Assembly: GCA_002269645.1 (NCBI GenBank)
Contig: NIVC01000035.1
Span: 124,001-188,000, forward strand
From: Macrostomum lignano
Taxonomy: Eukaryota
Length of the DNA stretch: 64,000 nucleotides
Reading direction: 5' to 3'
Below the pieces are notes generated by a model, which had not been told where the DNA came from, did not search any database, and worked only from the letters and a program-made list of their open reading frames with translations. The position numbers were made by a program, and so were the translations under genes. Every line of letters begins with the position of its first letter. Within the stretch, counting starts at the first letter, position 1. Below are positions 23,901 to 35,900 of the stretch, piece by piece.

Positions 23901-26900
23901 AGCTGGTCCTGCAGCAACAGCAGCGGCACCAGAAGCAGCAGCAGCAGCAGCAGCAATTTCGAAGCGGTCTCTCGTCGGACTCGCCACCAATGCAAACTGC
24001 CGCTGTGCGCCTACTAGAGTCCTGGGTTCGAGCCTCGCTGTCCGATTTCCTACTGATGAAAGACGACGTTAAAGAGTTCCTGGCCATGTTTGCCACTCTG
24101 GGCGATGAGCAGCGGGCGTGGAGTCAGGGCCTGTGGAGCTATCTGAAGTCCAATGTGAGCAATCCGTTGCCTTTTTTATGCCATTTTCCAGCCTCTATGC
24201 AGAAGACCAACAGACAGTTGTTTTGCTTGACAATTTCCAGGAGCAGCACCACAAGAACAAGAGCTGCGAGGGAAAAGAGCGAGGCGAAACGGTCAACATT
24301 GAGTACAAAAAGGTAAGCTAGAGTTCAAGTTCCTGGCGCGGACTGCTGTCTCAGTCAATTGCCGATATGTAGCGACAATATTGTTTTAGCTTGTCAAAGA
24401 TATTTTAGCTCGGAGCTCTCAAATAACGCTTGCTTGTGTTATTGCTGCAGCTCATACCTTACCTGTCTGTCAGTCTGCCCCTCCTGCCTGTCTGCCTCTT
24501 TAGCCCTCAAAAAAGCGTTTCCCGGAAAGGGGCAGAACTCTATAGGGTTTGGAAAAGCCATCCTTTATCCTAATCCTGCTCCCCTCAAAGGTATTTACTG
24601 CTGCCCTCATTCAGGCTCGCAGCTCCATCTGTAGTTAAGGGAACTTTGTTTTTAAGCAAGTTTGAGTTTGGGGGTGGGGCACGGCACGGTGGGGTCGACG
24701 CAGCCTCAGGGCGAGAGGGGGAGGCGGGGGGAGGCGGAGGGGGTAGGGACGAGGGAACGCGCAAAGAAGGGTGAAAGGGATCTGAGTTTTGAGGGTTTAG
24801 AGACGCCAGTCGCGATGAGTCGAAATAGAGAGGTTTGAGATAGATAAGGAAGCTTGAGCTATGCTTCGGAGTAGGGGTACAAAGCACTTTCTGTATCGCA
24901 GAAAACTTCCTGGCCACTTGTCCCCTGATTAGAGCTTGGGAGAGGCGAGATGTAGAACGAGAGCCAACCCTGCCTGGGTGAGATGGCAGCGCTGGGCTGC
25001 GATGGGCAACTTCTGAATTCTGGCGAGGCTGAGAAAGCCGCGAGAGGGGGGCAGATTGGATCAATATCCAATCAACTGCTGTGAGGGGAGGAGCAATTGA
25101 AGTCTGAGGGCTGGCCTGCGTGCGTGAGAGAGAGAGAGCGGAGGGCTGCATCTGGCAGATTAAACTTGCTACCTTGACAATTGGTTTTACTGTAGGGATT
25201 TAGAGAGGGATGAATTGAACAAGATTACTTTTAAACTGAAATTATATGTCTGTCTGTCTGTCTGTCTGTCTGTCTGTCTGTCTGTCTGTCTGTCTGTCTG
25301 TCTGTCTGTCTGTCTGTCTGTCTGTCTGTCTGTCTGTCTGTCTGTCTGTCTGTCTGTCTGTCTGTCTGTGTGACAATATCGTAGTGTTATATGTTTGCGT
25401 GTCTTAATAAACTGCCTCAGTTCCTTTCAATTTCTCAAGATACCACACGATGAGAAATGTCAGCCTTTCCCAGCGTAAGCTGTTTCCGGTGTCAAGAGAG
25501 CACTATTTTTACAGCATAAAAAATTCTCCCGGCTGCAACCTCCGCAGTTCAAGCAGATGGTGACTAGCGGCGATCTGCCCTGCACAAAGGACGAAGCAGC
25601 AACCCTAGCAGCAGTGCACCTTCACCTGGACGACGCATGGCCAGACAGCCGAGACTTCACGCGCAGCCTGGGCGGTCCATTGTCATGGCGGATCCGGCGC
25701 GGCCAGCAGGAGGGCCGAGCGGAGCTGATTAATATGCGGAAGGAGTTCCTCAGATCCGTGAGTGCGAGAGGAGGGAAGAGAGAGAGATTAGTCATAGCTA
25801 TGTACACTCAGAAATTGGCGGAGGGATTGGTGGGTCGGTGGGGTAGAGATTGGCCATAGCTATGTACACTTAGAAATAGGCGGAGGGATTGGTGGGTCGG
25901 TGGGGGTAGAGATTGGCCATAGCTATGTACACTTAGAAATAGGCGGAGGGATTGGTGGGTCGGTGGCAGTAGAGATTGGCCATAGCTATGTACACTTAGA
26001 AATAGGCGGAGGGATTGGTGGGTCGGTGGGGGTAGAGATTGGCCATAGCTATGTACACTTAGAAATAGGCGGAGGGATTGGTGGGTCGGTGGGGGTAGGG
26101 AGAGACTGGCCTCAGCTATGTACATTTGGCGTTGGCGGAGTCAGGTGGATGAAACAGATAAGTGGGAATTTTTTCAATTCTCTTAGATGATTCTCTTAGA
26201 TGAAAGAGATTAAAGCAAATCTGCTTGATGAAAATGGTGCAGAAATTGCTGATAAAAAGACACGACTAAAGTCTGAGCGGATTCGCTAGCAGATTAGCAA
26301 AGTTGATTTGAGCCATGCACTTTCGGCTCTCCTGCTGTCCTGCAAAAAGCGGAAGGCTGAGAGCCAGACCGTGGCGTATTCTTCAAACAATTTTGGCACC
26401 GTTTCAAGAGTAGCGAAGACCGGGGGGAATTGAAGAAGCCGGAAAAGAGTGAGAGAGTAGCTTGGGGGTTGATAAAGGTATTAAAAATAACACTAACCAG
26501 GTGGGACAGCTGGGAATATCGGGTGGAACTTCCGCTGCCTTAGGAGGTGGGCAAGCAGACTTGAGTGGCAGGCTGGCTTGAGCAAATGACATGCTAGCCT
26601 GCTGCGAGTGTAGAAAAACTTGATCGGATTGGTAAATATGGCTGAAGAGCGCTTTGCTAGGGGAATAGGATTACTGGGATATCCTGGGATGAATTTATTG
26701 ACTAAGACGATTTTTGTGGTGGATCAGTTCAATTTGGGATAATTAATTAAATTTATTTTCAAATACAAGCCTAAAAAACTCTGGTGCACTTTTATGCATA
26801 GAGTTTGCACTGATTGTGGGAGAAAGCTTTGGAGAATTTCAGTGATGATAGGGTGAATGGAAGAGCGAAGTGAGAGGAGAGTGGAGAGAGATGAGATAGC

Positions 26901-32900: not shown

Positions 32901-35900
32901 GGTCAACATTCTACCAGTAAAGTCCCTTGAGGTCAACATTCTACCAGTAAAGTCCCTTGAGGTCAACATTCTACCAGTAAAGTCCCTTGAGGTCAACATT
33001 CTACCAGTAAAGTCCCTTGAGGTCACCACTCTACTCGTATATACCTGAACAAGATGAGTGTTAAATCAGGTTCCTACACCTACACAAATTACGCAGGTGA
33101 AAGAGATCCAGAGAGGCAACTTACAGCGAAAGCAAGGCCGTCTGTTGGGCATTTCGGAGGAGAAGATTGTGCTGCTGGACAGCAAGAGCAAGGCCCTAAT
33201 CCGATCTCAACCTGTTTCCGAGCTGCGCCATTGGCACTTGGGAAATTCTCCCATTAACTGCGTGGAGTTGGACTTCCAGAGCTGCAAGCCGTGGAATCTG
33301 GTCTGCTCAAGCGAGGACGTGCTGCGGTCACTGTCGCTGGCTCTGTGGGAGGTCCTGGAGTGCGACGGTATCATGGTCCGGCGGAATAGCCTTGAGTTTG
33401 GTGAGCAGCAGTTCTTGTTTGATTTTTCTTACCTGTAAGATCATTGCTTACCTGTAAGATCATCAATTACCTGTAAGATCATTGATTATCTGTAAGATCA
33501 TTGATTACCTGTAAGATCATTGATTACCTGTAAGATCATCGATTACCTGTAAGATCATTGATTACCTGTAAGATCATCGATTACCTGTAAGATCATTGAT
33601 TACCTGTAAGATCATCGATTACCTGTAAGATCATTGATTACCTGTAAGATCATCGATTACCTGTAAGATCATTGCTTACCTGTAAGATCATCGATTACCT
33701 GTAAGATCATTGCTTACCTGTAAGATCATCGATTACCTGTAAGATCATCGATTACCTGTAAGATCATCGATTACCTGTAAGATCATCGATTACCTGTAAG
33801 ATCATCGATTACCTGTAAGATCATCGATTACCTGTAAGATCATTGATTACCTGTAAGATCATCGATTACCTGTAAGATCATTAATTACCTGTAAGATCAT
33901 CGATTACCTGTAAGATCATTGATTACCTGTAACATCATTGATTACCTGTAAGATCATTGCTTACCTGTAAGATCATCGATTACCTGTAAGATCATTGCTT
34001 ACCTGTAAGATCATCGATTACCTGTAAGATCATTGCTTACCTGTAAGATCATCGATTACCTGTAAGATCATTGATTACCTGTAAGATCATCGATTACCTG
34101 TAAGATCATTAATTACCTGTAAGATCATCGATTACCTGTAAGATCATTGATTACCTGTAACATCATTGATTACCTGTAAGATTATTGCTTACCTGTAAGA
34201 TCATCGATTACCTGTAAAATCATTGATTACCTGTAAGATCATCGATTACCTGTAAGATCATTGCTTACCTGTAAGATCATCGATTACCTGTAAGATCATC
34301 GATTACCTGTAAGATCATTAATTACCTGTAAGATCATCGATTACCTGTAAGATCATTGATTACCTGTAACATCATTGCTTACCTGTAAGATCATTGCTTA
34401 CCTGTAAGATCATTGCTTACCTGTAAGATCATCGATTACCTGTAAAATCATTGATTACCTGTAAGATCATTGCTTACCTGTAAGATCATCGATTACCTGT
34501 AAAATCATTAATTACCTGTAAGATCATCGATTACCTGTAAGATCATTGCTTACCTGTAAGATCATCGATTACCTGTAAGATCATCGATTACCTGTAAGAT
34601 CATCGATTACCTGTAAGATCATCGATTACCTGTAAGATCATTAATTACCTGTAAGATCATCGATTACCTGTAAGATCATTGATTACCTGTAACATCATTG
34701 CTTACCTGTAAGATCATTGCTTACCTGTAAGATCATCGATTACCTGTAAGATCATTGCTTACCTGTAAGATCATCGATTACCTGTAAGATCATTGCTTAC
34801 CTGTAAGATCATCGATTACCTGTAAGATCATTGATTACCTGTAAGATCATCGATTACCTGTAAGATCATTGCTTACCTGTAAGATCATCGATTACCTGTA
34901 AGATCATTGATTACCTGTAAGATCATTAATTACCTGTAAGATCATCGATTACCTGTAAGATCATTGATTACCTGTAAGATCATCGATTACCTGTAAGATC
35001 ATTGATTACCTGTAAGATCATCGATTACCTGTAAGATCATCGATTACCTGTAAGATCATTGCTTACCTGTAAGATCATCGATTACCTGTAAAATCATTAA
35101 TTACCTGTAAGATCATCGATTACCTGTAAGATCATTAATTACCTGTAACATCATCGATTACCTGTAAGATCATTGATTACCTGTAACATCATTGCTTACC
35201 TGTAAGATCATCGATTACCTGTAAGATCATTGATTACCTGTAAGATCATCGATTACCTGTAAGATCATTAATTACCTGTAAGATCATCGATTACCTGTAA
35301 GATCATCGATTACCTGTAAGATCATTGCTTACCTGTAAGATCATCGATTACCTGTAAGATCATTGATTACCTGTAAGATCATCGATTACCTGTAAGATCA
35401 TTGATTACCTGTAAGATCATCGATTACCTGTAAGATCATCGATTACCTGTAAGATCATTAATTACCTGTAAGATCATCGATTACCTGTAAGATCATTAAT
35501 TACCTGTAAGATCATTAATTACCTGTAAGATCATCGATTACCTGTAAGATCATTAATTACCTGTAACATCATCGATTACCTGTAAGATCATTGATTACCT
35601 GTAACATCATTGCTTACCTGTAAGATCATCGATTACCTGTAAGATCATTGATTACCTGTAAGATCATCGATTACCTGTAAGATCATTAATTACCTGTAAG
35701 ATCATCGATTACCTGTAAGATCATCGATTACCTGTAAGATCATTGCTTACCTGTAAGATCATCGATTACCTGTAAGATCATTGATTACCTGTAAGATCAT
35801 CGATTACCTGTAAGATCATTGATTACCTGTAAGATCATCGATTACCTGTAAGATCATTGCTTACCTGTGCGATCATCGCAATTTTCTGCCATAACCTGCA

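Follow-up and report, generated by a model that had tools for sequence, protein, structure and literature searches.

Does the exchange factor encoded in a 64,000-nucleotide stretch of the Macrostomum lignano genome truly carry two lobes of a FERM domain, without the third, in the linker between its REM and CDC25 domains, and if so, what would the two lobes do there? This stretch (contig NIVC01000035.1 of assembly GCA_002269645.1, positions 124,001 to 188,000 of the forward strand; hereafter the window, in whose own numbering all positions are given) was the subject of a preliminary description made from its letters, which placed the FERM F2 and F3 lobes at 25548-33400, between REM and CDC25, with no evident F1 lobe. 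We find that the lobes are there, that they are of the talin type and that they belong to a gene which we assign to phospholipase C-epsilon (PLC-epsilon). The last two points, the talin-type character of the lobes and the identity of the gene, are additions to the preliminary description.

Splice signals, the phase of the reading frame and alignments with orthologues were used to build an exon model (Table 1); in this part of the genome, short exons lie between introns composed largely of tandem repeats. All three peptides quoted in the preliminary description are found on the + strand where it had put them: the first (21 residues) at 25560-25622, the second (18 residues) at 32687-32740, with its final KE encoded by the next exon, past a GT-AG intron, and the third (14 residues) at 33139-33180. 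Both ends of 25548-33400 coincide exactly with exon boundaries, since 25548 immediately follows an AG acceptor (FKQMVTSG...) and the exon that closes with base 33400 is followed by GTGAGC. The four exons between these ends splice into a single open frame that encodes F2 and F3, and with the 24-codon exon on one side and the three CDC25 exons on the other they form a set of eight joined exons of 1761 nt, in one frame and free of stops. The acceptors are all AG, and the six internal donors checked are GT, bar one GC donor at 36205; the 3' end of the last joined exon (~38187) is approximate. A protein record of M. lignano, P0004, has junctions of the 24-codon exon identical to those of our model. 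A second record from the same species, P0005, skips this exon.

On the spliced product, the FERM_M family of Pfam scores 37.8 bits, where its cut-off is 23.8 (E=2.8e-9), and the match takes in positions 18-112 of the 112 in the profile; F2-F3 of the window, compared by itself with the PDB, finds talin-2 F2-F3 at E=5e-9. Matches of this strength lie well outside what chance would give. When a family profile of 27 sequences is used for the PDB search, talin-2 and talin-1 F2-F3 are matched at 1.5e-24 across both lobes, and next come kindlin-2 (4e-17), kindlin-3, myosin VIIa (5e-6), KRIT1 (4e-4) and ERM (0.01). The AlphaFold2 (AF2) model of a 321-residue F2-F3 construct has a mean predicted local distance difference test score (pLDDT) of 78.6 and a predicted template modelling score (pTM) of 0.72, and its fold is a helical lobe followed by seven strands with a C-terminal helix cap. 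The pLDDT is 87-97 in the F2 helices (90-97 in helices 1-2) and 83-97 in F3, and it is ~50-67, locally below 50, in a basic, low-confidence insert of ~60 residues within F2. Foldseek places talin F2-F3 at the top of the PDB (E~1e-11, target TM 0.70-0.79), followed by kindlin, KRIT1 and ERM, an order of relatives that is broadly the same as that obtained with the sequence profile. A FERM match is therefore present both by profile and by structure, and peptides, exon ends, Pfam, PDB, AF2 and Foldseek all agree on F2-F3 lobes at 25548-33400. The two lobes form a unit of their own that falls in the talin/kindlin subclass, and they are an F2-F3 fragment, not a complete three-lobed FERM domain. KRIT1, which also combines ankyrin repeats with FERM, was considered as the closest relative and rejected, given that talin and kindlin match far better in the profile search.

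The flanks of the module are those of an exchange factor. Aligned with its orthologues, the REM shows the classical motifs, with invariant R81, L82, L83, W119 and F127, and the profile of this alignment matches the REM of SOS2 and SOS1 at E=8e-10. Pfam RasGEF_N matches seven of eight family members (best 1.2e-12), and in Capsaspora it scores 43.6 bits against a cut-off of 28.3. On the other side, Pfam RasGEF matches CDC25 at E=5.9e-15 (profile positions 1-168 of 181), and the Foldseek matches for CDC25 are SOS and RasGRP2. The placement between REM and CDC25 is correct because the REM is supported by the family profile and by RasGEF_N in orthologues, and CDC25 by Pfam. The REM core of the window is split by a low-complexity coding insert of ~1.2 kb (22800-23990; poly-Ala, poly-Gln and Ser/Pro-rich), within which the frame changes from 2 to 1 at 23180-23360. 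A search for a short GT/GC-AG intron that would explain the change at 23.18-23.36 kb gave many weak candidates and none that was convincing; the change may be an assembly indel, and it leaves the F2-F3 finding untouched. The same insert holds a conserved motif of 15 residues, which is also found in the PLC-epsilon of spider, aphid and Trichinella (..LAFQ(R/K)EL.N(L/I)P..).

The assignment of the host gene rests on its wider layout. PLC-epsilon acts both downstream of Rap/Ras, as their effector, and on Rap, as its exchange factor. On the + strand of the window the order is ankyrin, helical region, REM, F2-F3, CDC25, EF-hand-like, X, Y, C2, RA1 and RA2, where the EF-hand-like match, at 19.3 bits, is just under its cut-off of 21 and the helical region at 18238-19614 has no Pfam match. 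Among named proteins, the closest are those called 'PLC epsilon-1-like' in molluscs, ticks, spiders and nematodes; ankyrin repeats are N-terminal in the orthologues as well, and fragmentary M. lignano records are up to 96% identical to the gene in the window. Because of this domain order, these PLCE1-like relatives and these M. lignano records, we identify the gene, as judged from sequence, as PLC-epsilon of M. lignano. The orthologues suggest that a single transcript would run across 38-43 kb.

Is F1 missing from the protein, or merely from the gene model? An F1 lobe requires ~80-100 residues. The final REM helix (...LWSYLKSN, end at 24154) is separated from F2 helix 1 by about 15 residues. 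According to the preliminary description only a 24-codon exon separates the end of REM from F2; the exon is real, but its last ~10 codons already encode F2 helix 1, which begins at residue 24 of the 321-residue AF2 construct, so that the true linker is the shorter stretch of ~15 residues. An AF2 model running from REM to CDC25 sets the last REM helix and F2 helix 1 three residues apart and has no beta structure before F3. Fifteen orthologues from about nine phyla likewise pass from REM to F2 without an ordered insert of lobe size, and in this 15-protein alignment the sea star alone has any insert at the junction, one that is Ser-rich and of low complexity. In Capsaspora, Nematostella and Oscarella the Pfam gap from RasGEF_N to FERM_M is 48-57 residues, part of which is flanking-helix sequence. 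In five orthologues of full length, Pfam detects neither FERM_N nor a ubiquitin-like domain nor an N-terminal RA domain.

An F1 exon could still have been missed, either in the 1.2-kb intron 24313-25547, to which the preliminary description had pointed, or in an assembly gap, in which case the absence would be an artefact of the gene model. The locus is repeat-rich, and farther upstream it holds at least one unexplained frame change, as described above. However, translation of this intron in its three + frames and comparison with Pfam reveals no F1-encoding exon, nor any family even at E<=10, and P0004 joins the REM and F2 exons directly. All 15 aligned orthologues, without a lobe-sized ordered insert, and all five full-length ones, without FERM_N, ubiquitin or N-terminal RA, speak against a missed exon as well, and we regard it as having next to no chance of being correct. 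Short junction, AF2 model, empty intron scan and orthologues thus agree that F1 is truly absent and not overlooked. Crystals of talin F2-F3 fragments that lack F0-F1 have been obtained (3g9w, 1mk7); therefore, the absent F1 need not be compensated.

The history of the layout bears on the same question. Word-indexed homologue searches returned 5 and 8 matches, with vertebrates absent, and an exhaustive representative search was needed; the exhaustive profile search collected 3621 proteins at E<=0.001, mostly via CDC25. With the PLC-bearing architecture assigned by Pfam or by source names, F2-F3 together with the PLC half is found in the flatworm, gastropods, chelicerates, insects, nematodes, the sea star Asterias and the hemichordate Saccoglossus, so that the layout is fused to the PLC-RA half in protostomes and ambulacrarians. 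An acanthocephalan protein of 3560 residues is of similar length and has the REM-F2F3-CDC25 part, to which its assignment is confined, and an amphipod fragment covers the CDC25 region only. Proteins from the sea anemone Nematostella (P0079), the sponge Oscarella (P0074) and the filasterean Capsaspora (P0070) have the order ankyrin-REM-F2F3-CDC25 and stop there, PLC and RA domains being absent. The CDC25 of these stand-alone proteins carries what we take, by our own reading, to be a Rap-GEF-like motif, PAVPYFGIYLKDLTFI. The Nematostella and Oscarella proteins have a long disordered linker between F3 and CDC25, and Oscarella P0074 has an extra N-terminal PID/PTB domain. This distribution indicates that the REM-F2F3-CDC25 layout is older than animals, and the stand-alone proteins may represent the ancestor of the N-terminal half of PLC-epsilon.

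The stand-alone proteins also bear on an idea raised in the preliminary description, namely that one of the C-terminal RA domains stands in for F1. RA domains and FERM F1 share the ubiquitin-like fold and the gene in the window holds two RA domains, one of which would dock on F2-F3 within the polypeptide and so complete the three-lobed FERM cloverleaf. Yet the Capsaspora, Oscarella and Nematostella proteins share the F1-less module while having no RA or PLC domains, and the crystallised talin-type F2-F3 fragments did without F0-F1. Because the stand-alone proteins end after CDC25, the F1-less state appears to predate any link to RA. The idea is accordingly disfavoured by the distribution of the domains, and we consider it very improbable.

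At the other end of this history, frog and lamprey PLCE1 match from CDC25 onward only, and ankyrin, REM and F2-F3 were not detected in either. A cryptic F2-F3 in vertebrate PLCE1 was sought with the profile (--max) upstream of CDC25 in frog, lamprey and others; the best E was 0.33 in this seven-sequence database, and the candidate was rejected. The lack of an N-terminal F2-F3 in frog and lamprey agrees with a report on rat PLC-epsilon, which is predicted to be unstructured over its first ~500 residues (PMC12501065). The simplest history, with its order read from these distributions, would be that a stand-alone guanine nucleotide exchange factor (GEF) of pre-metazoan age was fused to a PLC-RA half in bilaterians and that its structured N-terminus was then lost in vertebrates.

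What, then, would the pair do between REM and CDC25? In talin, K316, K324 and K343 contact phosphatidylinositol 4,5-bisphosphate (PI(4,5)P2, here also PIP2), W359 lines the peptide pocket of F3, and R358 is important for integrin binding. We mapped talin-1 residues onto the family columns through the profile for 19 full-length sequences. The talin numbering agrees with the residue names L325, K272 and R277 in established use, and by our own count the E269, Y270 and K306 of PDB entry titles fit it too. The K316 position is Lys in 17 of the 19 sequences, the K324 position is basic in the same number, and the K343 position is basic in 14. The R328 position, which is the Arg of the RLLGI strand, and the W359 position, a Trp, are both invariant. 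In the window the counterparts of K316, K324 and K343 are the Lys of VKE, the Arg of QRK and a Lys of SKSK, and the Trp of LRHW corresponds to W359.

A docking role is favoured because the positions by which talin contacts PIP2 and lines its peptide pocket are conserved. The F2-F3 pair, set into the linker from REM to CDC25, would serve for docking and orientation: it would keep the Rap/Ras exchange factor, together with the lipase that is attached to it in bilaterians, against an acidic phosphoinositide membrane, and the groove of F3 may in addition take up a short peptide, for instance a receptor tail. The pair would thereby take the role in localisation or regulation that RA (in Epac2) or PDZ+RA (in PDZ-GEF) has at the same position. 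The fold, the homology and the residue conservation are observed; binding to membranes or peptides would be predicted from them, as would any regulation of CDC25. We hold it to be moderately probable that the locus encodes a macrostomid PLC-epsilon with an old ankyrin-helical-REM-F2F3-CDC25 half, in which a talin-type pair that truly lacks F1 serves as a docking and orientation module.

Several observations weigh against this reading. Pfam FERM_C, which had been proposed as a check together with FERM_M, has no match to F3 in the window, where F3 is backed by AF2, the profile alignment and Foldseek; the IRS-type PTB family of Pfam stays below threshold on the F3 of the window (E=0.001, 19.5 bits against a cut-off of 22), whereas the F3 of Nematostella passes with 23.3 bits. 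Likewise, Pfam RasGEF_N has no match to the REM sequence of the window itself, which is diverged, and it is through the family profile that this REM is established. Among the talin positions, R358 is not conserved, the basic patch of F2 (K256/K272/R277) is mostly not conserved although partly kept, and the window has Ala at the position of K274. No positionally conserved NPxY/F motif that could act as an internal ligand for F3 was found in 15 proteins and the gene region of the window. Finally, the packing between domains is uncertain in the three-domain AF2 model of REM-F2F3-CDC25 (pTM 0.52), and the docking mechanism is a prediction from homology to talin and from residue conservation.

The same set of observations can be read in another way, in which F2-F3 has no ligand outside the protein and mainly serves the protein's own structure or autoregulation, while the talin-like residues are kept for folding. 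The module would set or gate the REM-CDC25 geometry, for example by occluding the GTPase site until it is released by a signal such as phosphorylation of the basic insert. Its position would suit this role, as it lies exactly in the linker in which Epac2 and PDZ-GEF have their regulatory inserts; the long, basic, low-confidence insert of F2 and the poor conservation of the integrin-contact position R358 point the same way. According to Tomioka et al. 2022 (PMC8752840), the function of the C. elegans long isoform, PLC-1(L), depends on three putative Akt sites, one of which lies in its FERM region. On the other hand, the positions of K316, K324, K343 and W359 are kept from Capsaspora to bilaterians, beyond what the fold requires, and the basic insert and the PLC-1(L) Akt-site data are compatible with a docking role or an internal one. 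We therefore consider a mainly internal role unlikely, although it is the alternative to docking that has the most to be said for it.

A bolder version of the docking role would make the pair a pre-metazoan device for docking on receptor tails and PIP2 together. The stand-alone protein would then have been a Rap GEF on the tails of adhesion receptors, a 'talin-head-like RapGEF' in an ancestral integrin-Rap-talin circuit; PLC-epsilon would later have arisen from this GEF and a PLC-RA half, and vertebrates would have swapped in a disordered N-terminus. We consider this proposal improbable.

Comparison with known systems sharpens the picture of the module. The talin head F2-F3 (talin-1/talin-2; 3g9w, 1mk7, 1y19, 6mfs) is the best match in sequence and structure across both lobes, and it shares with the module the VKE...RLLGI strand, the basic beta1-beta2 loop (K316/K324), the K343 position, the Trp of W359 and the IRS-type PTB flavour of F3. 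Unlike talin, the protein of the window has neither the ubiquitin-like lobes F0/F1 nor a rod, its pair is enclosed by the REM and CDC25 domains of an exchange factor, F2 carries the ~60-residue basic insert, the R358 position is not conserved, and identity is ~17%. KRIT1 resembles the protein of the window in combining ankyrin and FERM in the Rap1 pathway, and its F2-F3 match is significant but weaker (profile 4e-4, Foldseek ~1e-8); KRIT1 differs in having a complete F1-F2-F3, through the F1-F2 part of which it binds Rap1, and no REM or CDC25, and it is far more distant than talin. Epac2 (RAPGEF4) and PDZ-GEF (RAPGEF2/6) are known for RA or PDZ+RA inserted between REM and CDC25. They are thus like the protein of the window in having a localisation or regulatory module at this position, but theirs is not made of FERM lobes, and the CDC25 of the window groups with that of PLC-epsilon. 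Mammalian PLC-epsilon (PLCE1) has the same C-terminal half and the same type of CDC25 as the gene in the window, from which the vertebrate PLCE1 of frog and lamprey differs by the undetected ankyrin, REM and F2-F3. C. elegans PLC-1(L), the long isoform of PLC-epsilon, belongs to a gene family orthologous to the gene in the window; the nematode orthologues from Auanema, Mesorhabditis and Trichinella align with it across F2-F3 and CDC25, and in the alignment their REM region is much more diverged.

In the literature covered, which lay outside subscription journals, the feature comes up in one paper only. With Pfam 33.1, Tomioka et al. 2022 (PMC8752840) report a 'FERM domain' in the N-terminus specific to the long isoform of C. 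elegans PLC-1, and suggest PIP2-dependent localisation for it. The relevant passages mention neither the absence of F1 nor the talin type nor the placement between REM and CDC25, and in the literature covered we found no description of F1 absence, talin type, an upstream REM, a stand-alone pre-bilaterian form or a loss in vertebrates. Precomputed Pfam annotations of mollusc proteins list FERM_M. The architecture is real, conserved and little described, and it lies within a known gene family.

The findings refine that single remark on PLC-1(L) and single out specific residues in it. How the N-terminal region of mammalian PLC-epsilon, which is predicted to be disordered and resists purification, contributes to membrane targeting is a question of current interest (PMC12501065). 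In invertebrates and pre-metazoan lineages the N-terminus is structured instead, and these relatives may offer a tractable model of the ancestral N-terminal function. They are also a natural instance in which the F2 and F3 lobes of FERM do without F1 while embedded in a different catalytic unit, and they provide a testable route by which Rap activation could be coupled to PIP2 membranes or receptor tails, and a domain-level history of PLC-epsilon that comprises a stand-alone GEF, the PLC-RA fusion and the vertebrate loss of the structured N-terminus.

Table 1. Positions of the features of the PLC-epsilon gene in the window, in order along the + strand.
Feature	Position	Strand	Support and remarks
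Ankyrin-repeat region, N-terminal	4193-6024	+	Pfam Ank_2 E=9.1e-9 and Ank E=2.4e-8 on open reading frame 4828-6024; exon limits unrefined
Conserved helical region upstream of REM	18238-19614; coding blocks 18238-18510, 19405-19614	+	tblastn of M. lignano P0004/P0005, 69% and 84% identity
REM, first exon	~19780-19870	+	GTGAGT donor past 19870; aligns with orthologue motif RGA(S/T)LEK(I/V)..(I/L)LT; start approximate
REM, remainder	22569-24154	+	core helices 22569-~22790 and ~23990-24154
Exons joined	24241-24312, 25548-25757, 30753-30929, 32624-32737, 33097-33400, 35945-36204, 37241-37386, 37710-~38187	+	
24-codon exon	24241-24312	+	AG acceptor, GTAAGC donor; ~15-residue REM-F2 linker and start of F2 helix 1
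F2 exon 1: helices 1-2 and start of basic low-confidence insert	25548-25757	+	splice sites, Pfam FERM_M
F2 exon 2: remaining insert and helix 3	30753-30929	+	splice sites; residue-for-residue alignment with Pomacea and Patella
F2 exon 3: final helices	32624-32737	+	splice sites; tblastn to P0001/P0002/P0003; aligned with talin F2
F3 lobe, PTB/PH-like (...LRHW...ALWEVLE)	33097-33400	+	AF2, profile alignment over talin F3
CDC25 (RasGEF)	35945-~38187; exons 35945-36204, 37241-37386, 37710-~38187	+	Pfam RasGEF, tblastn to Pomacea PLCE1-like, Foldseek
PLC core: EF-hand-like, X, Y	43794-45725	+	Pfam PI-PLC-X 5.9e-61, PI-PLC-Y 2.3e-31
C2	45793-46086	+	Pfam C2 4e-6
RA1/RA2	46759-47787	+	Pfam RA 7.6e-12, two stretches

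The introns of the gene consist mostly of tandem repeats, with arrays at 33429-35878, 26872-28101, 28803-29537, 30092-30675, 30992-31475, 31818-32435 and 25247-25369. The intron between F3 and CDC25 is nearly all a 19/38-bp satellite in ~64 copies with 95% identity, and another intron of the gene holds ~177 copies of a 7-mer. These arrays give rise to many long spurious open reading frames on both strands. Within CDC25, the intron 36205-37240 is of the GC-AG type (donor GCAAGC), and its junction is backed by the orthologue alignment (..RLRE/VSSWI..).

The M. lignano protein records P0004, P0005, P0008 and P0009 are fragments with misleading names, such as 'RAB3GAP2_C domain-containing', which is the source name of the two records that match the helical region (P0004 and P0005), and 'tRNA_int_endo_N domain-containing'. 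P0008 has apparent frameshifts, and P0009 uses an upstream GT donor and so loses the conserved VHALIQ. The predicted proteins P0001 (Pomacea isoform X4), P0003, P0023 (Saccoglossus), P0049, P0058, P0059 and P0108 begin exactly at F2 helix 1 (M..L(I/V)VSG.LPC..). Such starts may reflect an internal alternative promoter, which would yield an isoform without ankyrin and REM, or gene models that consistently break off where the sequence upstream is rich in repeats.

Downstream of the stop of PLC-epsilon (~47.79 kb), the interval 48000-64000 contains further open reading frames on the + strand, for example at 50917-51297 and 56798-58176. Repeated segments of ~130-190 bp near 54.75, 56.22 and 63.0 kb encode near-identical peptides (..PQLLRGASEGC..RLFSPRTGGGG..), and these segments are probably a dispersed repeat.

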